From contig CM060734.1 of assembly GCA_030704615.1 (NCBI GenBank), positions 61,194,001 through 61,258,000 of the forward strand: DNA of 64,000 bases, in the 5' to 3' direction. Shown one piece after another: positions 34,973-63,895 of this stretch. The DNA is from Takakia lepidozioides (taxonomy: Eukaryota; Plantae; Bryophyta). The notes below the pieces were generated by a model. It was not told where the DNA came from. It worked only from the letters and a program-made list of their open reading frames with translations, and made no database searches. The first letter of the stretch is position 1; every line of letters starts with the position of its first letter. The position numbers and the translations under genes were made by a program.

Positions 34973-36415
34973 ATGGTGAAAATCTGCTGCATTGGAGCGG
35001 GGTACGTCGGAGGGCCGACCATGGCCATGATTGCTCTGAAATGTTCAGAGATTGAAGTGGTGGTGGTGGATATTTCCAAGCCAAGGATCGCTGCGTGGAA
35101 CAGTGACGAGCTTCCCATCTATGAGCCCGGGCTTGACGAGGTGGTGAAGCAATGCCGAGGGAAGAATCTGTTCTTCAGCACCGATGTGGAGAAGCACGTA
35201 GCGGAGGCTGACATTGTGTTTGTTTCGGTGAACACGCCTACCAAGACCAGGGGTCTTGGAGCTGGAAAGGCAGCCGATCTCACGTACTGGGAGAGCGCGG
35301 CTCGGATGATTGCCGATGTGTCGAAGTCGGACAAGATTGTGGTGGAAAAGTCGACTGTGCCGGTCAAAACCGCGGAGGCCATTGAGAAGATCCTGACACA
35401 CAACAACAAGGGTATCAATTTTCAGATTCTTTCTAACCCTGAGTTTCTTGCAGAGGGAACGGCGATTGAGGATCTGACGAAGCCCGACCGCGTGTTGATC
35501 GGAGGACGGCAGACTCCCGGAGGACAGAAAGCCGTAGAGGCTTTGAAGGCAGTGTACGCGCACTGGGTACCTGAAGACCGAATTCTCACAACCAATTTGT
35601 GGTCCGCTGAGCTGTCCAAGTTGGCAGCAAATGCATTTTTGGCACAGAGGATCTCTTCCATCAATGCCATGTCTGCACTCTGTGAATCCACTGGTGCTGA
35701 TGTGTCGGAGGTGGCCTATGCTGTCGGGAAAGACTCACGCATCGGGCCCAAGTTCTTGAATGCCAGTGTGGGATTTGGTGGATCTTGCTTTCAGAAGGAC
35801 ATATTGAACTTGGTGTACATATGTGAGTGCAATGGCCTCCCCGAGGTTGCACATTACTGGAAGCAGGTGGTGCAGATTAACGACTATCAGAAGACTCGCT
35901 TCGTGAAGCGCGTGGTCTCCTCCATGTTCAATACCGTGTCAGGAAAGAAGATCGCCATTCTTGGCTTTGCGTTCAAGAAGGATACCGGTGATACCAGGGA
36001 AACTCCAGCGATTGATGTTTGTCACGGACTTCTTGGAGACAGGGCTCTTCTCAATATCTACGACCCTCAGGTGACTGAAGATCAAATCAAACGGGATCTG
36101 GCCATGAATAAATTCGACTGGGACCATCCTCAGCACTTGCTGCCCCAGAGTCCTACTGCGTTCAAGCAGGTCAGTGTGGTGTGGGATGCTTACGTGGCAA
36201 CCAAGGATGCGCATGCCATCTGCGTGATCACAGAGTGGGATGAGTTCAAGAAGTTAGACTATCAGCGAATCTATGACAACATGCAGAAGCCAGCTTTCAT
36301 CTTCGATGGCCGCAATGTGCTTGATGTGGAGGCGCTCAGGAAGATTGGCTTTGTAGTTTACTCAATTGGAAAGCCTCTTGATCCCTGGGTGAAGGATCTA
36401 CAAGTTTCTATCTGA
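34973..36415 (+). CDS. UGD: UDP-glucose 6-dehydrogenase (480 aa, intronless CDS)
   Basis: [16 protein letters not shown] Rossmann motif, [16 protein letters not shown], catalytic [20 protein letters not shown]. Full length, no lesions. Confidence 0.99.
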
Positions 36416-42489: not shown

Positions 42490-43540
42490 AGATCTCAGTT
42501 TATTAAAATATTATGTTGTTGTTCTTGTAAGTAATTATTAACACCTATCTGTCAGTAACTGTTTGGCACACAAAATTAATATTGTCAACCCACAATCGAA
42601 CCTCTGAAATTTTGGTCTAGTGTCGGTATGGTCATATTAGCAATGTTGTTGGACCTTTGAAATTTTGGTGTCATACTTAGTATTATAGGCAAGCCAAGTT
42701 TGAAAACAAAAAATTGGTAAAACAAGAATAAATTACTTTACTATTTTATCTAAACTAAAGCTAACTTTTCAAAGTGAACATCTTCTAGCTGTCACAATCA
42801 AATACAATGTTGTGATTGTCTCATTCTCCCCCACACAAAAGTCCTCATAGATCTTTATATATGAGGTCATAGGTCAACAGGCGGTTGTAATGAATTACAT
42901 CCAACATACAGCTATAAACACAATTTCAACTAAATGCGGACTTTTGGCTTAAATCCGGACCAAACCTGATATACGGTACAATTGGATTAATTGATAAATA
43001 ATATTTTAAAATAACTTATATTTAGTCATCTTTAGTCATATGTAATCATTTAACTTAGAAACAAAGTCGAAGAGCTTCAAACATTATTGATTATTAAATT
43101 TTTATAGCAAGTCATTTAAAAAATTATCATTATATTAATTGTGGTCAATTTAATTGTCAAGGGGGTCCATGATACAATTGAGATATCATTATGGCCGCAA
43201 GGCGAAGTGGCTCTTAGTTACGTCGGCTTCGGAGCCTTCTCTCTGAGATATCATTATGTTTGTAATATGATTGATGTTATAGTTCGAGTGAAAGCGTTAA
43301 TATTGACAAGTTTGTTCATTTAATTGAATTTTCATTGAATCGGATACTTAACAAGAAATCTCAATTTGTTAAAATATTATATTATTATTATTATTGTAAT
43401 TAATTATTAACACCTAGCTGTCAGTAACTCTTTGGCACACAAAATTAATATTGTCAACCCACAATTAGCAATGTTGTCAAACATCGGAAATTTTGGTCTA
43501 GTGTCGGTATGGTAATGTTAGCAATGTCGTCGGACCTCTG
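42490..43540. repeat. Direct repeat of ~180 bp (42490-42670 vs 43355-43540)
   Basis: AATTATTAACACCTA.CTGTCAGTAACT.TTTGGCACACAAAATTAATATTGTCAACCCACAAT...GGTCTAGTGTCGGTATGGT occurs twice. Confidence 0.85.
43194..43243 (+). mobile_element. 50-bp 3'-end copy of the 39143-39399 family, with a 15-bp TSD
   Basis: Flanked by TGAGATATCATTATG (43179-43193 and 43244-43258). Shares GGCGAAGTGGCTCTTAGTTA and the TTCTCTC end. Confidence 0.78.
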
Positions 43541-43775: not shown

Positions 43776-44271
43776 CCGCACTACTAGCGACGAATTCTGA
43801 GAACTACGTTCAATTTTTCACAAAAAGGGGTGGGTCATCCCCATGGTGTTACATACATACAACCCATATTTCATTGTGTTCCGGAAGAAGAACGGCGGAG
43901 TGTTGCCGAAGCTATCATATTATTTTTATTCTTCAAAGGAAAGAGGGCCGAAATCTTGCTGGTCCCTCCTTTTCGGCATCCCTCCTTTTCGGCATCCCCA
44001 GAGTTTTACAAGTCCGATATCAATTGGAAGCACAAAAAGGTTGCCATTAAGACCAATTACGATAGGTAGACACCTAACACTTTCAAAAAGAGAAGCTACT
44101 TCTCACGAATCAGGCCCCTTCAATACAGTGAGGAGAAAATAACCTATTTGATAAAGATAAAGGTAAATTTTCTTTGATGTCCAATGATTTACAGAGCCTA
44201 CTGCTCAACACAGGGACCGGAGGTGGGGGGGGGGGGGGGAGAAAATCATACCACACCGACAAGGTCAACCT

Positions 44272-44338
44272 GCCTCTCATTTTAAGATAATAGGGTCTTC
44301 AATGGGCACGTGCGATGTGGCCGGTTGGAATGAGAGGC
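44272..44338. mobile_element. 67-bp minimal derivative of the MULE at 52672-63501
   Basis: About 54 bp of one TIR plus the last 10 bp (AATGAGAGGC) of the other. 9-bp TSD GGTCAACCT (44263-71 and 44339-47). Confidence 0.93.
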
Positions 44339-45139
44339 GGTCAACCTTGTCGTTTATTTATATATACGGTAAATCGTATTAAATCAAGGGAAATAACCTT
44401 GGGAGAACTTTAAGGCCTTAGGTGGGTATCATAGCCTAGGGAAGATATTTTTGTCTTGGATATGAAACTGCAAAAGGCTACATTTGTTTGTTGTGGTATG
44501 GATCAAAGATCCGGACCGAGGGGGTACATATTGACAATATTTCATGAAGATAAGAGCTGTTGCTCTACATAAATGACCAAAACAGAGGAAGTCTTGGATG
44601 GGGAGGACCACACTTAGGTTCCTTGGCTCCTATCATTGTTCTTCCCAGTCTTCTGTTTGAAAATAATCAGTTAAAGAGGGTAGCCCTGGGATGGCTGGAG
44701 ATGCACTAGTTACAAAGTTGCCACTAGCCTTGGCCCAGAGAGAGGGGGGCTGGTAAGCCAAGCTGGAAAATGTTGAACAAGAGAAAACTTCATCAGCACT
44801 ACTGAGAATGGTGAATTTCACATTGAGTTAACAATGCCTGAACAGATAGATACACTGAACATTCTTGCGAGGGACCAGTTCCATTATACAACATTAAAAC
44901 CAATCATACAAAGCCACAGTAGCCCATACCAGGGCTACTGGTCACCTTGGTCGAAGAATAATGACCTACAATGTTGCACTTCAGGCGTTTCCAAGGAACA
45001 AGAGCTGCACAATGAAGGTGCGAGCGACTAATACCACTTACTACCATGGCTTGGCCAGCTTCAAAGAATGTACTCATAAGACGTTGTTTGCCGTAGCCTT
45101 GTGGCCATTGACCCTGCGCCCAGTGTGAGCGGAACACAA

Positions 45140-47298
45140 AGGGATGTGGTGGCAAAGAGAAAATTCCTTTCCTCCTCCCCCACATCATGCAATACAAAGC
45201 GTGTGTCAAGCACATACCCCGCCTCCTTCATCATTCTTCTCACCTTTGCAGTATCATCCCACCTGCCAGCTGCAACATAGATGTTTGATAGCAACACATA
45301 CGTCGCGGCATCTGTTCATCCACTTGGGGATAGATGTTGCCGCATGTCAGCCATCTCCACATTGCCATGGATTCACACCACAACATCTGGATTGATTGGC
45401 ATTTTATTATTCAGGTCCACTGCCTCACCCAGTTGTCGCGCACGTCCAAGAAGCTCCACCATGCAGCCAAAGTGCTTTACTGTCAGAGTGACACCATGAT
45501 CTTGACTCAGGGAATCGAAGTAGCATCTTCTTTCATTCAGTAGGCCAGTGTATCTGCATGCAGAGAGAACACATAAACGTGATATTGTCGGCTTCAAGCC
45601 GTCCCTTTGCATTCCTTCAAATAGTTGCAGGACCTCCCTATGACAACCATGCTGGGCATATCCTGCGATCATAGCATTCAATGACACCACATTTCGTTCA
45701 GTCACATTGTCAAATACTCCCTTTGCATCCTTAATGCACCCACATTTCTCATACATGTCCACCAGGGCAGTGTCCAGAATGACATTTGGTACAATTCCAG
45801 CTTTGAGGATGTCACCATGCACCTCTTTGCCCTTTTCTAGGGCTGCCAGGCTTGCACAAGCATTGCAAACGCACACAATGTGATGTGGTTGCACCTCACC
45901 CCTTCCCCCATCATTTGCTCATGTCTCCAAGGCCTCCATCCCGCGCCCCTGCTGTGCATATCCTGCAAGTCTCGTTCAGCCATATTGTTGAACACTCCCT
46001 CCGCATCCTCAATGCTCCCACGGTTGGCATACATGTCCACGAGGGTATTAATGGTACAATTCCAGCTTTGGTGATGCTGCACCTCTTTGCCCTTTTACAG
46101 GGCTGCCAGGCTTGCACACGCACACAAACGTGATGTGGTCAGGCTTCACCCCTCCCCCCATCATTTGCTAATAGGTCTCCAAAGCCTCCATCCCGCGCCC
46201 CTGCTGTGCATACCGTGCAAGCATTGCGTTCCATGACACCACATCTCGTTCAGCTATAGTGTTGAAAACTCCCTTCGCATCCTTAATGCACCCACATTTG
46301 GCATACATGTCCACCAGGGCAATGTCCAGGATGACATCTGGTACACTTCCAGCTTTGACAATGTCACCATGGACCTCTTTCCCCTTTCCCAGAGCTCCCA
46401 TGCAAACACAAACAAATGTGATGTGGTTGGGCTTCACCCCTTTGCGCATCATTTGCTCATAGGTCTCCTCCATCCCGCACCCTTGCTGTGCATATCCTGC
46501 AATCATCGCACTCCACGACACCACATCTCGTTCAGCCATACTGTCGAACACCCCCTTCATACATGTCAACGAGGGTATTGTTCAGAAGGACATTTGGTAC
46601 AATTGCAGCTCTGACAATGTCACCATGCACCTCTTCGCCCTCTTCCAGAGCTGCCAGGCTTGCACACGCATTGCAAATGCACAGAAACATGAGGTGGTCG
46701 GGCTTCACCCCATCCCCCACCATTTGATCATAGGTCTCCAAGGCCTCCATACCACGCCTGGCATATGTGCATACCCTGCAAGCATCGTGTTCCACGTGAT
46801 CAAAGATCGTTGAGGCATTCTGTTGAACACTTGGTGAGCATCCATGATGGTCCCGCACTTAACATACATGTTGACAAGGGTGTTGAGTGGAAAAACATTT
46901 GGCATGAATCGACTTTGGATAATGTGAGTGTGCATCTGCTTTCCAGCTTCCAGACCTTCCATCTTGATGCACTTAAGCAAGAGACAGACATACGTATCTG
47001 AATCTGCTGAAATGCCTCCTTGGTTTAAAGTCTGTAGAGCCTCTGTCAGTCTGCCTGCCGCACAAAGCATCTTCACATACCCAGAAGTGCCAGAAGAGGC
47101 ATTGTGGACTCCCTCTCTTGATCCTCTTTCAGAAGCTGTGGTCAAGGTTGAGGTGCCTGATTTTATCAACTGTGCCGCTGCAGCTGCTGCCTTTAGTTGA
47201 TCATCTACATGAAGGTTTCTTGTAGCTATTGATCCACAGATAATCATAGGTAATCTGGAGTTTGGAAGTCCGGCCCTCTTGGATGAATCTAGACCCAC
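45140..47298 (-). pseudogene. PLS-class PPR (E/DYW-type RNA editing factor) pseudogene
   Basis: ALVDMYAKCG, ERDVVSWNAM, GVKPNHITF repeats; E domain YVLLSNIY; DYW start GYVLDTRFVLHDV. Many frameshifts, and truncated at the HSE motif. Confidence 0.9.
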
Positions 47299-47999
47299 AC
47301 TCTATCCCTGCTCCTTCAGCTATCCATGCCTCTGCACAAATCATGCATACATCTTTGCCTTGCTGCTAGTAGCTGACAATGACAGCCTAGATTTGTCTTA
47401 GGAAACACCCAAATCAACTTATCACACTAGTTCCTATGCTCAATTGCATCTGCTACTCTCTGTAATCCAACAGGCATTCACCTTTTTGCCTTGATTGTCC
47501 CACCATTGACTGGGGTCAGAAAAGTAGTCATTCCACAGCTCCTCCTCGTCTCTGTTACCTGTTTCTGGATACTTTCCTGTTGTCACATTGGCAGTATCAT
47601 GTCAGTCACTCCAAACTAACAAAGGTTCACGCAACCAGCTAACCTGCAGAATTCAACATGAAAATTTAGGGCTGATTCTGATACGATGGAAAAACAGGGT
47701 GAAATCTGTTGAATACCAACCATGTTACCATACCAAATGTACAAACCATGTTACAACCTCAATGCAGCTGCTCCCTCACAAGTTTCTGACATCTGTCCTT
47801 ACGTCATTTGTGTTCATCCCTCCAGCAAGGCTCAGCATAGTAGTGGATAGCATCACACAAGCTGCTGCCTGCTAACAATGCTTTTCACCACATGTTCTGC
47901 TACCCCCACATCTCCATGAAGTTTGCAGGCACCAAGCAAGGCCCTCCATACCCTAGGATCTGGTTGGATTGACATTTTGCTACTATAAACTCCTCTGCC

Positions 48000-49205
48000 T
48001 CATCTAATCGCCCTGCACAGCCAAGAAGGTCCACCATGCAACCATCGCGTTCCAAGACACCACATTTCATTCAGCCATATTGCTGTTCGCATCCTCGATG
48101 CTCCCACATTTGGCATGCATGTCATTGGGTACAATTCCAGCTCTGACAATGTCGCCATGGGCCTCTTTGCCCTTTTCCAGAGCTCCCAGGCTTGCACACG
48201 CATTGCAAACACAAACGTGATGTGGTTGGGCTTCACCCCTTCCCCCATCATTTGCTCATAGGTCTCCAAAGCCTCCACCCCACATCCCTGCTGTGCATAC
48301 CCTACAAGCATCGCGCTCCATGACACCACATCTCGTTCAGCCACATTGTTGAAAACTGCCCTTGCATCCTTAATACACCCACATTTGGCATACATGTCCA
48401 CCAGGGCAGTGTTCAGAAGAACATCTGGTACAATTCCAGCTTTTGACGATGTCATCATGGACCTCTTTCACCTTTTCCAGGGCTCCCAGGCTTGCACACG
48501 CATAAATGAACGTGATGGGGGTGAAATGTGTTGAAGAAGGTGCCTTCATTAGCAATGCCTGAGTTTATCAATTGTGCCGCTGCTGCTGCGGCTTCCAGTT
48601 GACCATCTACCCATGCAGGTTTCTTGTAGCTATCATTCCACAGGGAATCATAGGTAATCTGGAGCTTGAAATCCGACCCTCTTGGATGAATCTGGACCCA
48701 CACCCTATCCCTGCTCCTTCAGCTATATCCTGCAATCATGGCACACCACGAGACAGCATCACGTTGAACATCTTGTCAAATACTTTACAGGCATCCTGCA
48801 TGCTGCCACAAGTGGCATACATGTCCAAAAGGGTATTGTCCAGAATGATATCTGTAGCAATTCCCCCTTTTGACGATGTCACCGTGCACACTCTGCCCTT
48901 TTCCAGGGACCCCAGCTGGCATTGTTGAACACTTGACGTGCATCCTTCAGGCTGCCAGATTTCGCATACATATCAATAAGGGCATTCTGCAAAATGATAT
49001 CTGGGGCAAGTCCAGCTTTGAGGATGTCCTTGTGCACCTCTCTGCCCTTTCCAGGGGCCACAAGCTGGCGCATGCTTTGAGAACGCAAGTGAATGTGACC
49101 GCATTTGCCATCACCCCTTTGTGTATCATCTGGTCATAAACACAAACAAACGTGATGTGGTTGGGCTTCACCCCTTCACGCATCATTTGCTCATAGGTCT
49201 CCAAA
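48000..49205 (-). pseudogene. Second mosaic PLS-PPR pseudogene fragment
   Basis: Frameshifted PPR motifs. 48170-48450 resembles 46130-46500, and 48555-48725 duplicates 47150-47325. Confidence 0.85.
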
Positions 49206-52200
49206 GCATCTCATGCTTGGTGACATGCTCATGCTTTCCATAGTAGAAGGTCCGATCACAAAGACATGCATGATTATTTTGTAGCCCATCCCCACAAAGT
49301 CAAGAACCGTTCTTTGACGAGTCGTGGCCGCGAGCGGCATACTAGCTAGAGGGTCGTGGTAAGTTGCGGTGTAGGTTGGGCTCGAGGAACCGCCTACCAG
49401 CTGCGTGTAGAGGATTTGCGGCATGCATCTGATGAACAATTGCAATCTAGAGTTCCTACCGGCAAAGAAGAGTTTAATTGCTCTTCCTCACAGGGCGATT
49501 TGCGTTTTCTAAGTCCTACGGTATGTCTACAATTTATTCGATAGATGCCTTCCAAGTTTTAGCCGGGGCAAAAATTCAAGCCCCTTCACAAAACGACTCC
49601 CGAGTTCAAGGAAGCGGTTCTGTTCTCGACCGCCCAATGCCCCTCTTTCCGGCCAAGTCCGTAGTTCAAACGACTGTAGAGGAAGGGCTATGTATTCCCG
49701 GGAACGTTGGGTTTTAGTTCCAAGGGAACCTAGATCAAATATAGGGTCAAAGGCTCCCTGGGACCAATCTACCTATTCAATCAAAATAATTCACGATTAG
49801 TCCCTGACCCAAATCATACCACTTCAACTTAATGGGAGCCCTCGGCACTCCGGAATGGGGGTAGATCCCAGCCACACAATGCCCCTAATCCTTGGACTTC
49901 GCAACCCTCAATCCTATATTAGCCCCAACCACCCTTTTACTTAATTTTCAAGTCCAAAGAGGGTCCCTAAATAACTTCCATATAGGGCGAATTATATGAG
50001 TATTTATCCTATTTATAAAATCGCATGAATTAATAAATAAACAGGAAAAAAAACTTTAAAAAAAAGGAATAAGTAGAGGATTCCCTGAGGATCTCAAGGA
50101 TCCCGAGATTACCTCCAGGGGTCACAGGAACACCCTGGGAACGCTTTCCTTCATTGGGAACAACGGGGAACCGCTCTTCTCAATGGAAGCGCCCCTAATT
50201 CCATGACCCACTCAATGGCTCATTAGCAACTTATGGGGGGTGATTGGCCCCAGATGAATGAAAATTCAATTTTAATAGTTTATCATCCGTGTGGTATTTT
50301 CATGAATAAACAAACAATATAATGCTAGTGGGTCCCAAGGGCTATTCAGTGGGCTTTTCCCCCTCCCTAGTCTTAAATATGTGTGTTGGCTTTGATGGAG
50401 GATGCGTACTTTCGGTAATGAGACGACATGTACCTCGCTTTGCTGGCGATGGTATACAAAGATCTCATAATGGAATAAGAAAAATTGTGGGCGAAATGTG
50501 TTGCAGATTGTCATAAGGCCCCCAGCAGGCACTTGCAATCCATGCCACCTTCAAATCGACATGGGCCTGCCATGGCATCATTTGTCAAAGCGACGAGCCA
50601 TACCTCTGTGTTTGGAACGCTCTCCCCCCTCAACGCTGGAAAAACCTCAGAGCTCCACTCCATGGCCTCGCTAGAATTTGAGAGAGACGTGAATTGGAAA
50701 CATGTCAAACACCCCACCACGACTTCCAGGCTCAATTTTCGCTAAGTATGCTTATGTTGTAGATTAGTTCCTCGGTAATCTCTGCTTCATACTGAGCCAT
50801 TTGGAGGACTCTCATGAGAAAGCTAGGTTATATCTAGAGGATTTTTTCAAGTACGATGCTGCACTATTATGTACAGGTTCTGATTCACTCCATAGTGACT
50901 ACGGTATGTAACCCTTATGAAAATGGATGGAAAGTCTTAGAGGCCAACGAAAAATGGTTTTTTCATTCATTTATTGGACGATTAGTTTTTATTTTCATCC
51001 ATCTAGCCTACTGGACGAAATTATGATTTTCATCCATTGGACGAAATAGAAAATCACTTATCTAGCCTTCGCGAATGCTGTTGGCCTTGGAAATTGTGGT
51101 CGTTGCTAATCTCCACCATAAATCACCAAAATTGGTGATAAACTACAATTGGGTACATTGCATCAGCTTGTAAATTTTAGGTCCATCGGGGGTAAAAAGA
51201 TACTCCGCTCGCCAATCTTTGTAGTTTCGCCATATAGGAATTTTGCCATTTCCTTGGAAAACAATTTACTGGTGGTGGCCCTGGGGTCTTTGGCCCTACC
51301 ACTGGGTCACAGATCGTCCGAATTCATCTCCAACCAAACCGCATCGCTAACAAGGCCACGCCTCGCCTTGAAGTCGTCCTGATTCGCTGTACATCCCAAT
51401 GCAGCAACCTGCTTTTCTGCAATATTTCATCGCTATACAACTACTCCTACCAATTGCCAAGTTTTCCCTCGTCGTGAACCTACTGGACTTGAGAGAAGGG
51501 ATAACAGAAAAATTGCAATCATGTATCCAAACAGTCGCCTCGTAATGTTCGAACAGCCCTACCGTTACTGGTATCGATTTGGCAGCCTATCCTGCTGTCG
51601 ATGCAGCTTCCTACGGTCATTTTGACGCCAGAGTTCCTCTTGATGGCCACCTTAGACTCTGCCTAAGTTCCTAAGTGATGTACCAACGATCTTCCAAATA
51701 ACTAACAAAACGTCCTGCTTTGGCTATACAATGCCGAAACTGTCTGTCTTAAGATTAAAAACGATATGAAAATAAAAATGTACCCTTATATGCATCTACA
51801 CTCTTGCCTCTTTTCTCAAACGTGGCATCTCGATTAGCTCGTAATAGTTGAGGGTAGGGCCAGCTTATAAAGCAGTTGTGCGGTTTGCAAAGACTACAGA
51901 CATGATATTGTATGAAGCGGAGGGGGGAGAGTCTGCAAAAACATGGAGAAAAAATGGGTTAGTACTGGGGGGGGGGGGGGGGGGGAGAGGGGGAGGAGTA
52001 CAACACGTAAGCATAGTTGTAATATGCCCATGAGTTCTTGGAGGCTGGATTTAGTTGGAGGTCAACGGAGACGTGTACCAGAGCCAAACAGATGAGTAAC
52101 TAGATATTTGAGAACGAATTGGCATGACATTAGGTGGAGGTGATACCAAGCAAACGTTCTGAATGAATTGATGGGGTAGTGCCAAGGAAGTCGTTACCAA

Positions 52201-52671
52201 AATTTGGGTGGGAGAGCTAGTGATCGGGTGGGGAACGGATGTCGAAGTGGGTCAAGAGCCCGAAGCATGCAGAGAGAAGTTGAGAGAGGCTGTTACCTAT
52301 TGCAACATGCGTCGCAACCACCAGAGCCTCCAAGTGACATGAGGGTTGAAGCACGATTTGTTTGTGTCGTAGCATGAGGAGAGCATGAGCCTCTCTTGGT
52401 ATACACAGGAGTCCAACGAGAAGCAGCATAATGGTAGGGTGGTGATAGAGGGTTGAGCCATAGATGCATTAAAAGCACTCGGGGGTAGAGAGGAGAAGAC
52501 AACAAGTAATTCATTACAACCACCTGATGACCTCTGACCTCCTATATAAAGATCTATGAAGACTTTTATGTGGGGGAGAATGGGACAACCGCATTGCATT
52601 GATTGTGACAGCTATGTGCACTTTGAACATTTAGCTTTAATTTAGACGAAAAATTTAGCATAGTAATTTAT

Positions 52672-53081
52672 GCCTCTCATTTTACGATAATAGGGTCTTC
52701 AATGGGCACGTGCGATGTGGCCGGTGGGCCCCGCGCACGGACGCCCGGCTCCCCAGCACCCCGCCCGCCGCTGCGCGCGGTCGCCTAGCCGCGGGCGCGG
52801 CTGCAGCAACCACGCCCGCGCCCCCGTCCGCCGCGCGGCCAGTCCCCCGCCCATGAGTCCGCTGCCCTCCAGTCTGCCAGTCCGCTGCTGGCCAGTCTGC
52901 TGCCCAGCAGTCTGCCAGTCCGCCAGTCCGCTGCTGGCCAGTCCGTTGCCCAGCAGTCTGCCAGTCCGCCAGTCTGCCCGCCAGTCCGCTGGCCAGTCCC
53001 CTGCCATCTAGTCCGCTGACGGCACAAGATCGCCACCGTCCATTCCCATAACCCATCCGAGCCCTCTATTTTTAGGGCTGC
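52672..53081 (+). repeat. Left TIR (~410 bp, GC-rich, with an AGTCYG array)
   Basis: Reverse complement of 63160-63501, with extra internal repeat units. Confidence 0.93.
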
Positions 53082-54822
53082 GAAAATGGCAATGATCTTC
53101 CCACCAAATCCCGGCCGCTCTCTTTTGACGGCTGTTTGTTGTCCGATGTTGCGGTAGGCGTTTCCATGCACGCGACTGTTCCTCTTTTGCGCGCGATGTT
53201 CATGATGATGATGAAGCGTGTGCTTGAACATGAGAGGACTGTCTCGGCACTACAGCCACCATCGTGCATATGCTTCCACTATTTTTGCCTTCGTGTTGTG
53301 CTTTCGGGAATCTTTGTTTTATGGTTTGGTTCTATGTCATAAATATGGAAAATGCGGACATCTGTCGTCGATAACGTCCTCTGCTTGTGATCCATCATGA
53401 TACGTTTAGCCCCTTCGTGCTGCATCCCTCATGAGAGCCTTCACAAGTTTAGTTCGTTAAAGGAACCCATGGGTAACATCGGTGTGAAAATGGCGGAAGC
53501 GTATGCACATGGGGCGTGTATTGCAGATTTCGTATCGGACGATGGGACTGTTTATGTGACCAAGTATAGCGGCTTGCATCCGTCGTGCATAAGTTGTGGA
53601 AAAGGGTGGAGAATTTGAAGAAACCCAGCTTTGTGATGGATCCACATGGTATTATATAAAGGATGGCAGCACAAAAAAGCAATTCGAGTCGTCACGGAAC
53701 ACCATCCAGTCGTACGGTCCTCAAACATCCACACGCACCTGCTGAATGCAGATGTCTGAGCCACGACGGGAGTAGGTGCAGAATCGGTACATTGTCGCAT
53801 TTGCCAGGAGACGGACCAGGCTGAGACAATTGCATCTGCAAATGCGCGTGGATGTTTGAGGTCTGTTGTGTCGCGAGTCTGTTCACAGTGGGTCCGCTGG
53901 CCCATCAGTGCTCCGGATATTCCCCTTATCGCGTGCATAACAGTCAGTTTGGAGGCGGTCTGCTGGAAGTCCGTCTGTTGGGATATCAGTCTGTCGCACT
54001 TGTGAATTTGTCAGTCTGTTGTGTCGGAAGTCTGTTGCACTAAATCTGTTTGACTTCTTATTTTCCCTCCGGTCAGTCTTTTGGCTTGTTCTCCCGCCAG
54101 TCTGGCGAAACGTCCGTCTGCTGGACAGTTCTCCTCTATGGATATCAGTCTGTTGGACTGTGCATGCATCAATCTGTTGTGCCGCGAGTCTGTTCGCAAT
54201 GGGTGTGTTCGACTTTCCTGTTCTCCCCTTACTCTCTTTTGTCGGACCGCCAGTCCAGCGGACTATTCGCTTTGCTGAGGCGAAGCGGCTTCATATTGGA
54301 GGCACTTCCCTGCCATCAGACTCTCGGCCCGATGGGAAATGAGTCTGTTGCACTTGCGAGGACCGTGGATGAATTTAGTACGATGCGTTCGTTCGGTGGA
54401 CGTATTCAATGCGATGACGGCGGATAGTTGGCGCCTGTGAAATCGCGCCACGTTGGCAGTGCCATGCCCGCTTTCCCCCTTCTACTTCTACTTTCTTCTC
54501 ATGTTCCCTGTGCGATCGACTCCATTCTCTTCGCGCCAGTTTCTTCGCACTGTTTTGCACTGTTTTGTTTTCCTCTTTGCGTTTCCATCACCGTAACGAA
54601 AGACGGCCGTTCTTCCCCAGGTGTGGAGAGTCGCGGTGAGCCGCGAAGCGTCGCAAACACGTTCGCCTTCGTAACAACTCGAAGTTCATCGGCTCGGTGA
54701 GGTTTTCACTTGCTGCGGTGTTTCCAATCCATTCTGTGTCCTCTTCTTGCTTAGGGTGAGTCTTTTCATAGGACTTCTATCTGTCGCTCATTGTCCTTGC
54801 ACCCTCGTTTCATTCTGCAGTG

Positions 54823-57800
54823 ATGGAGGATGCTTGTGAAAAGGATGGAGCGGACTGGGTGGATTTTGTGCACCAAACCAGACTGAAGAAGAAGCGAAGG
54901 TACTCGTACTCACCAGACAAGTTTGATCATAAAATAGTGGAAGCATTTGTAGACCTCCGTGCCCGGAAGCCCACAAACTCGAATTGGCAGAAGGACAAGC
55001 TCTTCTGTCCCTTCTGTGAAGAGGTTATCAAGGACAAAATCCAACTAAATCGGCATTGTGTTGACACGGGTTGCAAGGAGACTGTTGCAATGATTCCACG
55101 GGATTTCAAACCTTGGCCGATACTGAAAGAAATGTCGATTGTCAAAGAGGCCACAATGCGCTTGCGCGGATCAGTGCTTGACCCCCGCACTTTGGAATTA
55201 GACGAAGTGCGCGCACGGTATGGCGTCCATTCTGGTGGCCCGTCAATGGAGGATTTGCAAGTGCAGGGAACGCCGGACGCTGCCAGAAAACGTAAACTGA
55301 GTGATGGGGCCCAAAAAAAGGAGAGGCAAAAAAAAGAGAAGGCTGCAAGGTCTGCTCGCGAGGCAAGGGCAAAATCCACACAACAGACTTAACCCCGTCC
55401 TGGGCGGCAGACCCACACCATCAGTACTGATACTGAAAGTGAATCTGCTCAGGGCCTGGAAGGGGTGACAAGTCCAGTGGACATTGACTTGTTTGACCAG
55501 ACTCGGCAGCAGACTTACCAAAAACCAAAAACTCAACAGAGCATTGAAGGGCCAGTCTGCCCTGGCACATTGTGCCTCGTTGACTTTGGGCTTTTCCCAC
55601 CAGAGTGCCCACCAATTGGGGATCCAGACTTCTTCCGTTATTTCTACAGAGTTGCCCAGTCAGGTCTGCTACGCACATTCATCCGACAGGCGGAATAGAA
55701 CTGGTTGAACAGCTTTGAAGATGAAGATGACGATGATGAAGTAGAGGAGGTAATGGTCAGTCTGACCGCCCAATCTGTTCTCTGTGCTGTTTGAGTCCAT
55801 CATCGGGATCACGTTGTCTATTCAGTCTGGTCAGTCCGCTGCGTTCTCTCCTCAGTCCGCTGGCTCACTCCGCTCGTCAGTTAGTCTGTTTTATATCGCT
55901 GCATTACTTACTGAGTCCGTTTGTCAGTCCGCTGGTCCAGTCCACTGGTATAGTCTACTAGTTGCCTCCACCCTACGTATGCACGTTACGTCTGTCAGTC
56001 TGCTGGTCTATGAGTCCAGCCCGCTGCATGAGGTGAATATAGAGTCCACGTCCAAGTTCTCTGCCTTGTACGAGGATGAACGTGTTTCTATTCGTAGGGC
56101 CATTCAGGCTTGGCGGATACCTAGCAATGATGCTCCTTTACAAGCGACTGCAGTGCATGCGGAAGTGGACCGCGTGCGAGAGTACATATTATTGAAGTAT
56201 CCTGGGTCATCTGCTGCTATAGCAACATTACATATTCAAGACGCATCGGGGGGGAATGCGTCTGGGACAGCCGAGTCTGTCATCCAGCAGACTCCCATTC
56301 AGCAGGCCGTCATCCAGCAGACTCCCGTTCAGCAGCCTGTCATCCAGCAGACTCCAACGGAGCAGACTCCCAACGAGCAGCTTGTCATCCTGCAGACTCC
56401 TCTCCAGGAGCCCATCATGCAGCCCATGCCAATGGGAAGTCCTGTCATCCAACAGACTGCAGACCAGCAGACTGACCAGCCGACTGCCTTTCTCTCACAT
56501 AGCACGACGTTTTTTGCAGTTTGGCGATCGCCATCACTGTTAATTCGACCCGGAGTTGAAGACCTCATACTTCCCCGGCTTAGGGTAGGAGAAATTAATC
56601 CCCATTTGGATTGGCATAATGAGCTCCACCGGATTGTTGCGGACCGCCGGTGGTCATTTGTACCCTTTCATTATTCCATGGAGTTTTCTATTGAAGAAGC
56701 CAACCATGTTCTGGAAGCCGCCTCTGTTGTTGCCATTGAAGCCACAAGCGTCCAAAATGCGCCGCCTCTACTTGTGCAGCTGATTCTCATGGATGACCCA
56801 CGGCCTGAAGACCTCAGACATATGCCTATGGCACATCCAACCTTTGGGGTGCGAAGAAAGCACTTGTTCGGATTGACTGAGGAGGACTTTGAGCGCATGA
56901 CAGCTTCCTTCCTACAACACAGATGGATGCAATTTGGCAATTTTCGCTCATACAACAAGTTGATGAAGGATCTGCACAGTTTGAGGATGGACTTACTCCA
57001 TGGAACAGACCATTCACAGAACTTTGTGGTGGATGACGCATTGCACTGGTTTGCATTGGTGATGGAGCGAGTAGTATTCGACATTGTTTTGCAGAATCCT
57101 AATGTCTTCAAAGTCCTGTGGTGTGGGATCCCAACTGAAGACCGCATCAGCGCCATTGCTCATCTCGATGGAGTATGCCTGTGCCGGCAAATCAAGGACA
57201 TTGGCCTCGTCGGAAATCTCTTGGAAGGTAAAATGTTATGGGCAACTTTTGTGTTTCAGCTCAATTTCTTTTGCCAACTTTTTTAGAAGTTCACATTTGC
57301 ATAAACATATGTTGCAGGGTGAGTTGATCTAGGAGAAAAGCAAGTGCAGGCTGCTTTCGACTCTTTTGCCAGAGGTGCAAGGGACCTTGTCCTGGCTTTA
57401 CAAGGAGTTTGGGAGACTGTCCAGCAGACTGGCCACAAGAATGTCCAACAACATATATCCCTACGACACATGTGGGCAGACTGCCCAAGTGCTGGAGACC
57501 AAGCATGTGCACCAGACCGTCCCGGGTAATAGGTCGGATCACTCCCAGCAGACTGCCCCGCACACACATACTCAGTATGTGCAAACAGTACTGAGCGGAC
57601 AACAAATTTTGTAGACTTTGCAGCAGACCGGAGAACAGACCGGCCAACAGACTGCCCCTCAGCTGATTGTGCATCAGACCAGCAAACATGGCCACCAGAC
57701 TGCCCCTCAGCAGACTATACAACAGACCGTGCAGCAGACCGACGAATCCAGCTAGCAGATTGCCCCTCAGCAGACTGTGCAGCACACTGGCGAACCCACT

Positions 57801-59401
57801 CAGCAGATGGCCGAGCAGACTATCCAGGAGACTAACAGCCAGTCTGTTCCCTGGATTGTGCAACAGACTCGGATGCACTGGCCTCACTGGGACCCTGTGG
57901 ACGAATTTCTGCTGAGTTCCCAACAACATGTTTTTGGATCTGTCAGTATGAGTGTTTTGACCGAGTCCACTTTTCCACCAAGCACATTCACTGACGACGT
58001 CATCAGGTCACCGGTAAAGCATTCTTATCCAGCTCCCCGTGGCCTGCCTTCTATGACCTTCCAGCTTAGTCCCGTTTTTGTGCGCTCAGTGGCGAAAGCC
58101 ATAGATGAGTCTTACGTGATGACCGAACTCAATCTGGGAACGCAAAACCATATCATAGATCTTACAGAAGAGTCTGAGGAAGCAATTGCCGGTGGGTCTC
58201 CCATACATGTTCTTGATGTTTCCCAAGTCCATGGAGATCCGAACACCCAGCCGGCTGTCCACCAGATTGACCAGCACACTGAACAGTGGACACATGGAAG
58301 GACTGCCGAACAACCTGTGGCGGGGCAGCATATTGTCTTCATTGATGAGCAGACTGAACCGCAGACTAACCGGCAGACTGCATAGGTCACAGATGGAAGG
58401 ACTGACCAGGATGGCTCGGAGTGGCAGACTGCACAGCTCAGCTCTGACTGCACAGTTCAGACTGCACGGCCTGACCAACACACTACACACTTCACAGAGG
58501 GAAGGACTGATGACCAACCTGCCACCGAGCACACTGCCCACATTGAGGAAGAGACTGAACCGCAGAGTTGCCAATAGACTGCACAGTTCACAGACGAAAG
58601 AACTGACGAAGAACCGGCGGCCGAGCAGACTGCCCACATTGAGCAACAGATTGAACATGATGGCAGACACACTGACAAGGAACCATATGCGGCGCAGACA
58701 CCGTCTGGTATAGCACTGGATTACATGGAGTCTGCTCCCTCACCCCTTAGGCAGGTTGTGCCATTTCCTCTTTCAGCACTGTTGTTTATGTTTTAGCACA
58801 TTGTGAAATTGGGCTAATTCGCCATTTTGCTCGGTATCCTCACAGGATGTTCGTCCCTCCGTCGGCAGACTGTCTACTTCTGAGGACATGACATCTTTTG
58901 CCCATGCTGCAAACGTGGGATCGACAACCAAGAAAGGTGTGGGGGTGAGCACGCCCCCCGATGCGTGGGTCAGTTCTACGCATGCGACCCACGAAGCTGC
59001 AAAGACAAGTCCAGCAAGTGTAAACAAACCTGCTGACCAGCCTCTGTTGCGAAGTAAGGCGGCAGCGCTGCGTTTGTCTGCTATATCCAGCCCGCCTACA
59101 GCTGTCCCTACTTCCCAGGGGAGAGGCAAAACATGAGATTGTCCAAGCATTTCAGTTCCACGCGCCTGATGTGCCCCAGCAACCATTCAGCTGGGAGTGT
59201 GGCTTTTACGTCATGTCATTCATTCAAGTATTTTATGAGTGTGTAAAAGTCAGAGCAAATGTCTCCAAGACTGCAAAGCCAAAGAGAGAAACACATTTCA
59301 CGAAGGACTGGTTTACTTTCAAGTTTGCACTTGGGCAGCGAATACAGTGTGCCCAGTATATCGTGCGGGGATTGGATAATGTAGAGAAACTGCTCTCATG
59401 A
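54823..59401 (+). pseudogene. MULE cargo gene: N-terminal CxxC-H-C zinc-finger-like region, Q/T-rich repeats and a C-terminal Ulp1/C48 protease remnant
   Basis: Long spliced reading frames: 54823-~55750 (stops at 55390 and 55696), 56108-57227, ~57320-58753, 58846-59136, 59156-59401. LFCPFCEE...NRHC; last exon DVPQQPFSWECGFYVMSF. It may be more than one gene. Confidence 0.65.
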
Positions 59402-59675
59402 GTATGATGTACTTGTCCATTGAAGTCTATGTACCAAAATAAAAAATGCGAGTCTTTTACTGGCGCTTGCAGTCTGTTGACTGTGACTTTGTTGGGAGAC
59501 TGTGTGGGAGTCAGTTGGGAGACTGGAGGAGTCCGTTGGGAGACTGTGCATTAGTCCATTGCGGACTTGTATTTCAGAAAGGGACAATGCTACCAGAGGA
59601 ATTGCAGACTTATATTGTTTTCTTCGTGACACCTACACGACGTGAAACCTTGTCTCTTTTCGAGGCATTGCAGAC

Positions 59676-62600
59676 TTATATTGTTTTCTTCGTGACATCT
59701 ATACGACCTGAAACCTTGCGAATTTTCGAGTATATATGTGCTGCAGGTGCAGGTGCAGACACCCTCTTGCTGGTTCTCCGCAAAACCCTAGGACAGGTTT
59801 TCCAGGCCTCCACGAAATCTCGTCTCCTTTTCAGAGACATGTTGTTGTTGTCGTTCAGAGGACGGAAAGCCTTCGCTGCCGCAGGGTGCAACATTCCAGC
59901 CGCACTTTTCGCCAGGATATCAACGAGCTGCCCTCTGTACATATGAAGAGCAGATCGGGCATGTGCCTCCAGGTATTTGTCATCACCTACAATGCGAAGT
60001 ATGTCCGCGAATTCTTGTTCCATTGAGACCTCCAGAGGTGCCTCGTCGTAGGGGAAGTCGTCCGGAGGATGTCTTTTCATGAACTGATTGGATTCGTCGT
60101 TGCCGCCGGCACCGTTGCCCAAGAGCAAGTTAGGTAATCCTCCATGAATGGTTCCCAGCGCCGTGCCACAAGCGCGCACAAGGAGGCCATCCTACAGGTC
60201 AGGGTGAAGCATCTTCAGGACACGGACCTGATGCTTGCATAAGTTTCCCTTCATTGCCCATGGGCACGTGCAACAACCCCAATCGCAATCAGGATTGTAA
60301 ACAATATATGTTGTGCCGGGGTGGTTGCTGCTGAGAACGTAGGCTGGTTCACCAGGACCCAAAGGAAGAGTAACACTCTCAGCAGGAATGTCTCATGCCG
60401 GAAGTATAGAACTGGATATGTACTTTTCGTGCTTGTCATTTCTTATGAACCCGTGGGTCTTCAAATGGATTGCGTACCAGTAGTGTGTTAGTACATGGCC
60501 AGTGAGTTCCCATATAAGCCAATCCACTCTACGACCACTCATCTTGCCTTTTCCCATGGCAAGTCTTGTTTTTAGATTTCCACGGTATGCCTCAATGCTT
60601 GCGTTTGTGTCTTGGATCGCATGAGGGACATGGCGGGCTGCTGTATACCACATTGCTATTTTGGGCTTCCAATACTGTTCAATATAGTCAAGAAATTCAT
60701 GTCCTTTCGGGTATTTTGACCTCATACGACGGATTCTCCTTGCAACCCACCGAAGCGCTATTTTCTCGTTGCGTGGTCCCCCTCTACAGTACATGAGGTC
60801 TACCATATCCTTCAACAAGTTTACAGCGGTCACCGGATCTTTCGTTTTCTTGCATGATTGCTTCACCCATGCCTTGCGGACATGCCAAAGGCAGAGGAAA
60901 ATGAGTACTCCTTCAAAAATAATTCTGCACAACACACATGATACACATTAGAGTCTTGGGATCGGACTGCAATGGTGAACTGTAACAGCGACCTGTATCA
61001 GCGGGCAGAGCCACTGGACTCGCCCAGTGGACAGTACAATGCCATGACGTTGATGTGCTGGAATAACCCCATTGGACTACCCAGTGGACTTCCCCATTGG
61101 ACTTCCCCTAGCTAGGACTGGGGCAACGGACTGCCCCATTGGACTGCCACAACGGACTGCCGAGCGGACTTGCCAGGGATTGCCGAGTGGACTTGGCAGC
61201 GGACGGCCGACCCCAGGGACTGCTGAGTGGACTTGCCAGCGGACTTGGCAACGGACTGCCGAGCGGACTTGCCGGGGACTGATGAGCGGACTTGATAGCG
61301 GACTACCAGTGGATTTGCCCAGCGAACTGCCATCGGGTTTCGCCACAAGAGTCTGCCAGTGGACTGTAGCAATGGACCGGTGCTGTGGACCAACAGACTT
61401 ACCGAATAACATTGATTTCTGCTTCGGCATCGTCCACAATGAAGGCATTGGGTCGCCAGCTCGGCAAATCTGCGAGGAGTGAATCGCGCAAGGCTCTCAT
61501 CCACGGAACTAGGTCTCTTGTCCGATTCCTCGCGGATAGGATATAGGCAACTGGTATACCGTTCAACCACTCGTCGAAGACCATCAACGTGTACAATGGG
61601 AACTGTTGGAATGCACAATGTAAGATGGTCAGAGCATGCAAATTCCGCTCAGTTCTGCACGATAAGACTTCATAAGAGTAATGAGGTCTGCAGCGGTTCA
61701 CAATGGGTTTGCCCCTCGGTCTTCCGCAACGTACACATGAAAACATACAGAAAGGGTCAGCACACCAAATTTTATGTGAATGTTGCATGGTACTATGCTA
61801 TCATGCTCGTACAAGTCCATGGAATCGTTCGAATAGTACATTGTCATGATTTGTCCCAAAGGTTGCATCACATGCAACGATACAGTCATGTCCTAGTTCC
61901 AGCATTCGTCGTTTCTGCCACGGAGTCTGTATGCCAATACTGAAATCTCCATCAAAATGCTCGAATGTTGGCTCTAATTTCTCTTCTTGATAGAAAAAAA
62001 CAGACGCAGGATTCTGGTCTTTCCACATGCGTACACTCTCCGCATCATCGGCGTGCTTTTTGAAGGTTTGCCACGCACGTTTCTTGGCAAGGTTGCGAAC
62101 ATCTTGCTCCAACAAGAAATCATCGCGGGTCCATGCATCGCCCAAGCCGGTGTTGTTCATCACGTGCTCTTTATGCTCCATCATGATTTGGGCGACCGAC
62201 AGGCCTCGGCACAAACACTCGACGACCCAGGCTTTCAATTCCTTGCTAATGTGTGGTGCATAGGCGTGGCGGGTATTCCTAAACTCTGCGGACTTCCCAT
62301 GCGAGGGTTTCCCTTGCGCATCTGTATGCTCCATGTTGTTGTAATACGTGAGGACACAGATGTCAGGGGCGAGATAGCATTGCTGGACCTTGAAACAGCA
62401 TTGGCAACCACGCTTGTAAGACTCTCCATACTCCGACTTCTTTCTCCTTGGGCCTTTATGAGGGCAAGATGTTCGAGCACCACAAGAGGTCATCCACGCT
62501 TCTGTTTTGGATCCTCCACTATTGCCTTGTTGGTGCGCTTGTCATCAGGACCGTAACAGCATTGATGTGTGGACAAAAAATTCTAAAATTGATATCCAAT

Positions 62601-63015
62601 GACTTGAGGAAGCATAAAATCAGAGAACTCGTGAAACAAAAAATGGCAACAGACATACAATGAAACGTCAAAAGGACTGAGGATGGTGCACACATCATAC
62701 TGGACAGAAATGTGTTGGCTCTGGGTGCTTTTCGCGAGGCGGGTTCCACTTTAGAATGGACATTCACCCAAAACTGAGTGGGGTAGTCCTCCAAACTCTC
62801 CTCTCCTAGGACAAAGTCACCAACTCTATCCCAAGGTATGCAGGCCTTTTCAACATTCACTCGCACACCCATAAACCCATATTGCGTCTCACTCTTCCAA
62901 TGAAATCCTTCCTGTTGAAGGGTCCTGGTTTTGCTGTTTACAAATATTGTCGAAGAGGCCGTATAAGCGGGCTTTCCGTGATCAGTATATCATCGGGTTT
63001 TGCTTCCACGTCCAT
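59676..63015 (-). pseudogene. MULE DDE transposase with SWIM zinc finger, disrupted
   Basis: KRGCQC...H..H N-terminal zinc domain, DATFGTN (D1), IVDDAEAE (D2), CLWHVRKAW, ASIEAY (E), SWIM CTCPWAMKGNLCKH (~60230-60275). Introns at ~62695-62566, ~61839-61604 and 61402-60928. Stops at 62938 and 60192, plus frameshifts. Confidence 0.92.
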
Positions 63016-63159
63016 GCCCTATATAGTACAAAGGACACGCTTCTGAACATGCAAGAAACGTGCCGTAGTACAGGACACGATCGACAACGTGCCAGGAGAA
63101 CAGTGCGCACGTTCGCGGCTGCTGGCAAGTGGCAAGCGGCATGGATGCAGATTTGAATT

Positions 63160-63501
63160 GCAGCCCTAAAAATAGAGGGCTCGGGTTATGGGAATGGACG
63201 GTGACGATCTTGCGCCGTCAGCGGACTGGATGACAGGGGACTGGCCAGCGGACTGGCGGACTGGCAGATTGCTGGGCAGCAGATTTGCCAGCAGCGGACT
63301 GGCAGACTGGAGGGCAGCGGACTCATGGGCGGGGGACTGGCCGCGCGGCGGACGGGGCGCGGGCGCGGTTGTTGCAGCCGCGTCTGCGGCTGGGCGACCG
63401 CGCGCGGCGGCGGGCGGGGCGGAGGGTGGGCGTCCGTGCGCGGGCCCATCGGCCACATCGCACGTGCCCATTGAAGACCCTATTATCTTAAAATGAGAGG
63501 C
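63160..63501 (-). repeat. Right TIR (~342 bp)
   Basis: Inverted copy of 52672-53081. Confidence 0.93.
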
Positions 63502-63895
63502 GTAATTTATGCTTGTTTTACCAGTTTTTTTTTGTAGACATGGCTTGCCTATTGTACTATTTTAAAAATAAAATAAAATAGGGGGATCGTAGCCATAATA
63601 AAATTTATTATAACTAATTATGACATCAAGGCACATTGGGTGGTAGCTCATTCTAGCGACGACCCAAGGTCCGAAGCTAATTTAGCGTAGAGCAAGAATA
63701 GGCTGCCAAAGTGCCACGTTTTTGTCACCACGTCATCGTCGCCACGTTTCGTCGTCAAATTCTGTCAAGTCTGCCCGAACTGCCCGTCACTCACGCGCGC
63801 GCGCTGCTGCTTCTTTCTCGCTCGCTGTCCTTCGTTTGAGTTTGCGTGTCTATGTGCGCGTCTGCCTTTGAGCGCTAGGTGTGGTTGCTGGAATC

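Follow-up and report, generated by a model that had tools for sequence, protein, structure and literature searches.

A decaying Mutator-like element in Takakia lepidozioides and its relation to conserved SWIM genes of angiosperms

Does a transposable element in a bryophyte genome belong to the lineage from which conserved angiosperm genes were recruited, and is it still mobile? The question is raised by a stretch of 64,000 nucleotides from Takakia lepidozioides (GenBank assembly GCA_030704615.1, contig CM060734.1, positions 61,194,001 to 61,258,000; hereafter "the window"), in which a Mutator-like element (MULE) of 10,830 bp spans positions 52672-63501 and carries a transposase gene resembling the angiosperm SWIM genes of the At4g13970 and At1g60560 type. 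An initial annotation, made from the letters alone, had taken it for a recently mobile member of the transposon lineage from which those genes were exapted. Our analysis indicates that it is very probably a non-autonomous, decaying copy of a two-gene MULE, i.e. of a cut-and-paste transposon, from an old intron-bearing lineage shared with the angiosperm SWIM families, to which it stands as a collateral relative and not as a demonstrated sister. The element as such is an ordinary dead MULE, and its value lies in being an anchor that ties two conserved, unstudied angiosperm genes to a mobile MULE lineage.

MULEs are recognized by inverted ends that often measure hundreds of base pairs, by a target-site duplication of 9-11 bp, and by a transposase with an Asp-Asp-Glu (DDE) core that includes a CxxH motif; a SWIM finger is common but not universal. 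The boundaries of the Takakia element were delimited as follows:

52663-52671 (no strand): left target-site duplication GTAATTTAT, the same 9-mer on both flanks
about 52672-53081, plus strand: left terminal inverted repeat, about 410 bp, from inverted-repeat pairs, end alignment, tandem repeats and motif tally
about 63160-63501, minus strand: right terminal inverted repeat, about 342 bp, from inverted-repeat search and end alignment, with six minus-oriented motif units
63502-63510 (no strand): right target-site duplication GTAATTTAT, identical to the left copy at 9/9 positions

The left end opens at 52672 with GCCTCTCATTTTACGATAATAGGGTC, and the right end closes at 63501 with the reverse complement of that sequence. 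Depending on the segment, the two ends are 82-97% complementary (37 of the terminal 38 nt match), and they differ by one 58-bp indel inside an array of the repeat CCAGTC(C/T)GC. The two terminal repeats, the perfect 9-bp duplication and the reading of the locus as a MULE bounded by both, all of them already proposed in the initial annotation, are thereby confirmed. A chance inverted repeat was considered as an explanation of the ends and rejected. The terminal 26-mer of the element has no occurrence in the metagenome contigs. Just outside the left end lies one arm of another inverted pair of 88 nt (42811-42898 and 52506-52593; 90% complementary, 9.6 kb apart), which may represent the ends or copies of a different repeat.

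The left inverted end is G+C-rich and contains 13 plus-oriented AGTC(C/T)G units in CCAGTC(C/T)GC arrays. The motif AGTC(C/T)G occurs 125 times in the window against an expectation of 50, and about 90 of these occurrences fall inside the element, where the enrichment is about five-fold. Between 52856 and 63323 its orientation is plus in the left part of the element and minus in the right part. The units cluster in the two inverted ends and in the third intron of the transposase gene, and part of the remainder lies in CAGCAGACT coding repeats. In the simplest reading, the arrays may be putative transposase-binding sites.

The transposase gene lies next to the right end on the minus strand. Its introns were located by reading the DNA against aligned relatives, the splice sites being predicted; the exons were never joined, and searches, alignments and trees were all carried out on single exons or stop-free pieces. 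The gene model comprises the following parts:

62701-62872, minus strand: exon 1, from the first ATG, with the frame open upstream to 62989; contains IPWDRVGDFVLGE; GT donor at 62700
62700-62583, minus strand: intron 1, GTATGA...TTTTAG
61840-62582, minus strand: exon 2, with YGPDD, KRGCQC, YAPHISKEL, RDDFL, FSIGIQTPWQ and DATFGTN
61839-61603, minus strand: intron 2, GT-AG
61403-61602, minus strand: exon 3, with GIPVAYI and FIVDDAEAE; second catalytic D at 61432-61434
60925-61402, minus strand: intron 3, GTAAGT...TGCAG, with 10 minus-oriented AGTCCG-type units, the motif of the inverted ends
59676-60924, minus strand: exon 4, with LCLWH, NASIEAY, RVDWLI, the SWIM finger (CxC...CxH) and the C-terminal tail
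Sites in exon 4, minus strand: LCLWH (CxxH) at 60882-60893, catalytic E at 60591-60593, SWIM finger at 60231-60272

A Cys/His finger (KRGCQC...H...H) and a helical domain are also encoded by exon 2, in which the first catalytic D occupies 61867-61869. The columns of the three catalytic residues and LCLWH align with relatives that match the Pfam families MULE (PF10551) and ZSWIM1-3 RNaseH (PF21056) as well as SWIM; those relatives are found at E-values of 1e-20 to 1e-40 and match both PF10551 and PF21056. The piece containing the SWIM finger (60195-60392) itself reaches 21.2 bits with PF04434 (cut-off 19.6). Hence the three DDE residues reported earlier stand, and so does the series of protein blocks, which runs in the order given in the initial annotation from IPWDRVGDFVLGE through the six blocks of exon 2 to GIPVAYI, RVDWLI and the SWIM finger. 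By contrast with MuDR, neither the window exons nor 24 full-length relatives contain the MuDR-type DNA-binding domain PF03108 (E <= 0.01), and the N-terminal domain of the window transposase is specific to its clade; the FAR1 DNA-binding domain PF03101 is likewise absent from the same exons and relatives at the same threshold. An AlphaFold model of exon 2 (pLDDT, the predicted local distance difference test, 73) found no fold match in the PDB at E <= 0.001, with weak winged-helix-like rows only.

Is this gene the element's own transposase, and has its family moved? A pattern built from the 38-nt terminus has three matches in the window against a chance expectation of zero, and the third leads to an internally deleted copy:

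44272-44338 (44263-44347 with its duplications), plus strand: mini-element of 67 bp, from pattern search, sequence and alignment

This mini-element retains the initial 54 nt of one end and the final 10-14 nt of the opposite one, and a perfect 9-bp duplication of its own, GGTCAACCT, borders it on both sides. It seems to be an internal-deletion product such as Mu elements are known to generate. The copy with a different duplication, for which a genome-wide search had been recommended, is already present within the same window. Furthermore, two related elements of 6.5-6.7 kb were found in the ENA assembly ERZ25073694 (L005, 8689-15397; L006, 8906-15377). Their transposases have about 40% identity to the window in exon 2, and their inverted ends of about 300 bp start with GGCGGACGTTAAATGGCATGGGGGTCTTAATGG and are flanked by differing 10-bp duplications, GTTGAGAGGG and CTTAGTTTAT. 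The core of these ends, GGGTCTT-AATGG, resembles AGGGTCTTCAATGG of the window ends, which may be chance. The mini-element and these two relatives, each with different duplications, show that the family transposed in the past.

These findings also bear on a capture of the Pack-MULE type, in which unrelated Mutator ends would carry a host SWIM gene as cargo instead of their own transposase. The plus-strand region described below shows that the element does carry extra material, and no inverted ends were detected within 10 kb of the related liverwort locus in Riccia (protein P0008, locus L003), where only AT-microsatellite "inverted repeats" occur. Against a capture, however, stands the presence here of a complete DDE/CxxH/SWIM transposase next to one end, as is usual for mudrA, and on both L005 and L006 the distantly related gene stands by itself between inverted ends of 300 bp, which are bounded by target duplications. 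Moreover, the transposase family is multi-copy in gymnosperms: in Taxus, 18 proteins that cluster at >=90% identity are distributed over several chromosomes, and Cryptomeria has several copies. Pack-MULE captures usually involve short pieces, not whole genes, unlike the whole 3.3-kb gene found here. We therefore consider a captured host gene highly improbable and treat the protein as the transposase of the element.

Which proteins, then, are its relatives? An exhaustive phmmer search of exon 2 against 1.84 billion representative proteins returned 440 hits at E <= 0.001, the best of them 41-43% identical, and all those checked belong to one clade. Sequences from liverwort, fern and metagenomes come nearest, and there is no close copy among the searched proteins. 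Full-length hits with a species name come from the liverwort Riccia, the ferns Adiantum capillus-veneris and A. nelumboides, the gymnosperms Taxus and Cryptomeria, and two angiosperm families, whose members appear with E-values of roughly 1e-23 to 1e-26 and are 36-38% identical over some 200 N-terminal residues. The MULE lineage of the window transposase is thus present in a liverwort, ferns and gymnosperms, and outside the window, too, it has been observed between inverted ends with target duplications.

The first angiosperm family (family A) comprises proteins of about 870-1170 residues named "zinc ion binding" or "SWIM-type domain-containing", and displays the motifs FGPDD, FAPYISEDL, RDDLL, GIQTEWQ and DSRFGTN, in agreement with those given in the initial annotation. 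Proteins of the second (family B; about 710-810 residues) are named "SWIM zinc finger family protein" and align with family A across 660 residues almost without gaps, at 43% identity; both families occur from Amborella onwards. They fit the At4g13970 and At1g60560 types, respectively, on the basis of database names only, and no Arabidopsis sequence is among the hits listed. AT4G13970 carries the annotation "Zinc ion binding", and its locus is collinear in Arabidopsis and Brassica rapa. The homology assumed earlier extends over the full length: the angiosperm genes are collinear with the window transposase from the N-terminal domain (IPxxRV block) through the DDE core to the SWIM finger and beyond, sharing D-D-E, the SWIM Cys/His residues and the positions of three introns. 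In 124 family A sequences (P0165, P0184 and 122 others), the first D is kept in 117, the second D in 122, and E and all four SWIM Cys/His residues in all 124. The CxxH histidine, by contrast, is replaced by Arg in 121 of 124 family A sequences and in 7/7 of family B, whereas the window keeps it (LCLWH). In most family A members no Pfam domain at all was found, even at E <= 1, and as Pfam sees no transposase domain, this family may have been missed by domain screens and perhaps for that reason is not labelled as transposase-derived.

In cacao and rubber tree, family A genes have the same neighbours in the same order (DUF247, a small gene, a TIM21-type gene on the other strand, the SWIM gene and an R2R3 MYB gene), and no inverted repeats flank either locus. 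These observations support the conclusion that the angiosperm SWIM genes behave as stationary host genes, and they bear out the description of them as immobile. They differ from the Takakia element in that they have fixed neighbours, short branches and Arg in CxxH, and lack inverted ends, while the latter possesses ends, a target duplication, the His and a broken frame.

Intron positions connect the two groups further. Introns 1-3 of the cacao and rubber tree genes follow ...ILEYIL, DSRFGTNKLK and ...LTIR, respectively; Riccia P0008 has introns in the same three places, and so has the window, the first within a few residues. Shared intron positions over such distances point to common descent from an intron-bearing gene and argue against chance resemblance. 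Together with the homology they support the view that the two conserved, syntenic angiosperm families, which lack terminal inverted repeats, come from the same lineage as the window transposase. A fourth intron (KIG|MW) is common to Riccia and angiosperms and absent from the window.

The same evidence might be taken to mean that the element is recently mobile and that its transposase branches within the At4g13970/At1g60560 clade or as sister group to it, in other words a living representative of the direct progenitor lineage. The perfect 9-bp duplication, the strong homology and the three shared introns would suit such an origin. The phylogenetic trees (exon 2: 54 rows, 217 columns; exon 4: 26 rows) provide little for it. 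In the exon-2 tree, a single starred clade (support 96/91) unites families A and B and groups weakly (80/52) with the Taxus and Cryptomeria copies. The window arises there, like several other branches, from an unresolved backbone, with Riccia P0008 nearest by path. The window branches from an unresolved backbone in the exon-4 tree as well, where Adiantum P0025 (35% identity) is the nearest row. Forcing window and angiosperms into one clade costs 18 log-likelihood units for exon 2; the approximately unbiased (AU) tests do not formally reject this grouping (p = 0.093 for exon 2, p = 0.33 for exon 4). The angiosperm terminal branches measure 0.005-0.25 changes per column (0.005-0.085 in exon 2), as opposed to about 0.5-2 for most others. 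Besides the trees, which place gymnosperm copies beside the angiosperm clade, the CxxH His of the window, where both angiosperm families have Arg, and its missing fourth intron speak against direct progenitorship, as does the state of the window copy itself. We thus regard this origin as unlikely. Of the claim that the host genes were exapted from the lineage of this element, membership in the same MULE lineage holds, on the strength of homology and shared introns; a sister or nested position does not emerge, the window being a backbone branch in both trees.

The element is, indeed, no longer functional. In exon 2, YGPDD and KRGCQC are encoded in different frames of one exon, and there must therefore be a frameshift at about 62480-62540. 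In exon 4, an in-frame TGA (60393-60395) replaces a residue of the conserved A-x-IP stretch, and an in-frame TAG (60192-60194) breaks the C-terminal tail that follows the SWIM finger. These three lesions, which the initial annotation does not mention, leave the window copy dead and unable to make transposase. The mode of its decay becomes apparent from comparison with a partial copy on a Logan contig (L004; run SRR15431198), which is collinear with window positions 54621-57445 and 97.6% identical at aligned sites. The two differ at 66 of 2806 aligned sites; at 47 of the 66, the window copy shows a C>T or G>A change, compared with five transitions in the reverse direction. Relative to L004, the C>T rate per cytosine in the window declines from CG (5.7%) over CHG (3.6%) to CHH (2.2%). 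Silenced, methylated plant transposons accumulate one-sided C>T changes, and the pattern observed here fits deamination at the methylated cytosines of an element silenced in this way, methylation being deduced from the substitutions. Given three disabling mutations and such strongly one-sided decay, the characterization of this copy as "recently mobile" is unsupported.

For an intact copy, a working mechanism can be proposed by analogy with what is established for MULEs. A four-exon gene on the minus strand would give rise to a transposase of about 790 residues, composed from N to C terminus of a Cys/His finger with a helical domain, an RNase-H-like DDE core with CxxH, and a SWIM finger. The protein would recognize the long inverted ends, its probable contact sites being the 38 conserved terminal nucleotides and the CCAGTC(C/T)GC arrays, and would then excise the element and reinsert it by means of a 9-bp staggered cut, which would yield the duplication observed.

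Several points weigh against the interpretation of the element as a decaying MULE from a lineage shared with the angiosperm genes. No window exon reaches the Pfam MULE score (PF10551) in a per-exon scan, and for this reason the assignment runs through relatives. The splice sites of the transposase gene are predictions from the DNA and aligned relatives, and the frameshift could be an assembly error. Both trees are unrooted and contain no MURA, FAR1/FHY3 or MUSTANG outgroups, and their resolution is low because exons were analysed separately. Finally, the exhaustive phmmer search and the word-index search found no intact or near-identical transposase copy (best 43% identity), and present-day activity of the family is consequently hypothetical.

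How does the element compare with known systems? It resembles MuDR and other MULEs in its long inverted ends, the 9-bp duplication, a DDE transposase, as judged through its relatives, with CxxH and C-terminal SWIM finger, and in having internally deleted derivatives. As in two-gene MULEs such as MuDR, a second gene lies on the opposite strand and converges on the transposase gene. The window transposase is set apart from MURA, FAR1/FHY3 and MUSTANG because their diagnostic domains are absent, the exhaustive hit list is small and the N-terminal domain is clade-specific. FHY3/FAR1/FRS and MUSTANG are known MULE-derived host genes of plants, and the angiosperm SWIM genes would be like them in that a MULE transposase became fixed as a conserved angiosperm gene; the difference is that FHY3/FAR1/FRS and MUSTANG belong, as judged by domain content, to other MULE sub-lineages. 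It is quite possible, if still somewhat doubtful, that the At4g13970- and At1g60560-type families constitute a third, unrecognised exapted MULE set beside FRS and MUSTANG, with a single descent from an intron-bearing MULE lineage that in non-seed plants still has its ends and duplications. If so, the angiosperm proteins, which kept D-D-E and the SWIM finger and lost the CxxH His, may still bind or even nick DNA.

We found no work on the origin of At4g13970 and At1g60560 in the searchable literature, although a prior listing is possible, and no paper there that combines "SWIM zinc finger family" with transposase and domestication. The Arabidopsis Genome Initiative (AGI) codes of both genes are absent from PMC5715367 (text and supplements searched) and from PMC4948706. 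As the ends and duplications of the Takakia element show, the protein family of both angiosperm genes is a transposase family. This suggests for At4g13970 and At1g60560 the hypothesis of a domesticated transposase with intact DDE and SWIM and an altered CxxH, and mobile copies versus fixed genes provide a comparison set for the residues changed at domestication.

Apart from the transposase gene, the interior of the element contains two further components:

54820-57286, plus strand: accessory open reading frames (ORFs) of 190 and then 506 residues, the latter with a Gln/Thr/Pro-rich repeat
59024-59398, plus strand: remnant of an Ulp1/C48 peptidase, PF02902, 21.2 bits (cut-off 20.7)

The only relative found for the accessory ORFs is contig L004 (94% identical), where their counterparts are open as 334 and 411 residues, uninterrupted by the two additional stops of the window. 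A pN/pS (the ratio of non-synonymous to synonymous differences) of 0.56-0.66 separates the two copies, and ESM Atlas searches with both ORFs gave nothing usable. Gln/Thr-rich repeats lie between these ORFs and the peptidase match. This match, of marginal score and weaker still in a second scan, is confined to the surroundings of the catalytic Cys, where it spans 31 residues (156-186 of the 217 profile positions), and the PF02902 search did not find the His/Asp part of the domain at 59024-59398. MULEs with an Ulp1/C48 peptidase have been described as C48-bearing KI-MULEs (PMC4948706), and the partial match in the Takakia element is reminiscent of them, though its domain is incomplete.

Elsewhere in the window, an intronless and apparently intact gene for UDP-glucose 6-dehydrogenase (480 residues) occupies 34973-36415 on the plus strand. 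Three consecutive long ORFs at 567-4616 (plus strand) have, as far as their translations can be judged by eye, the look of an endonuclease/reverse transcriptase of the long interspersed nuclear element (LINE) type. Diverged direct repeats of 60-235 nt, with 3-6 copies each, extend over 45570-49210 and overlap a region of pentatricopeptide repeat (PPR)-like ORFs (46705-47298, minus strand); they probably represent a tandemly duplicated PPR gene cluster.

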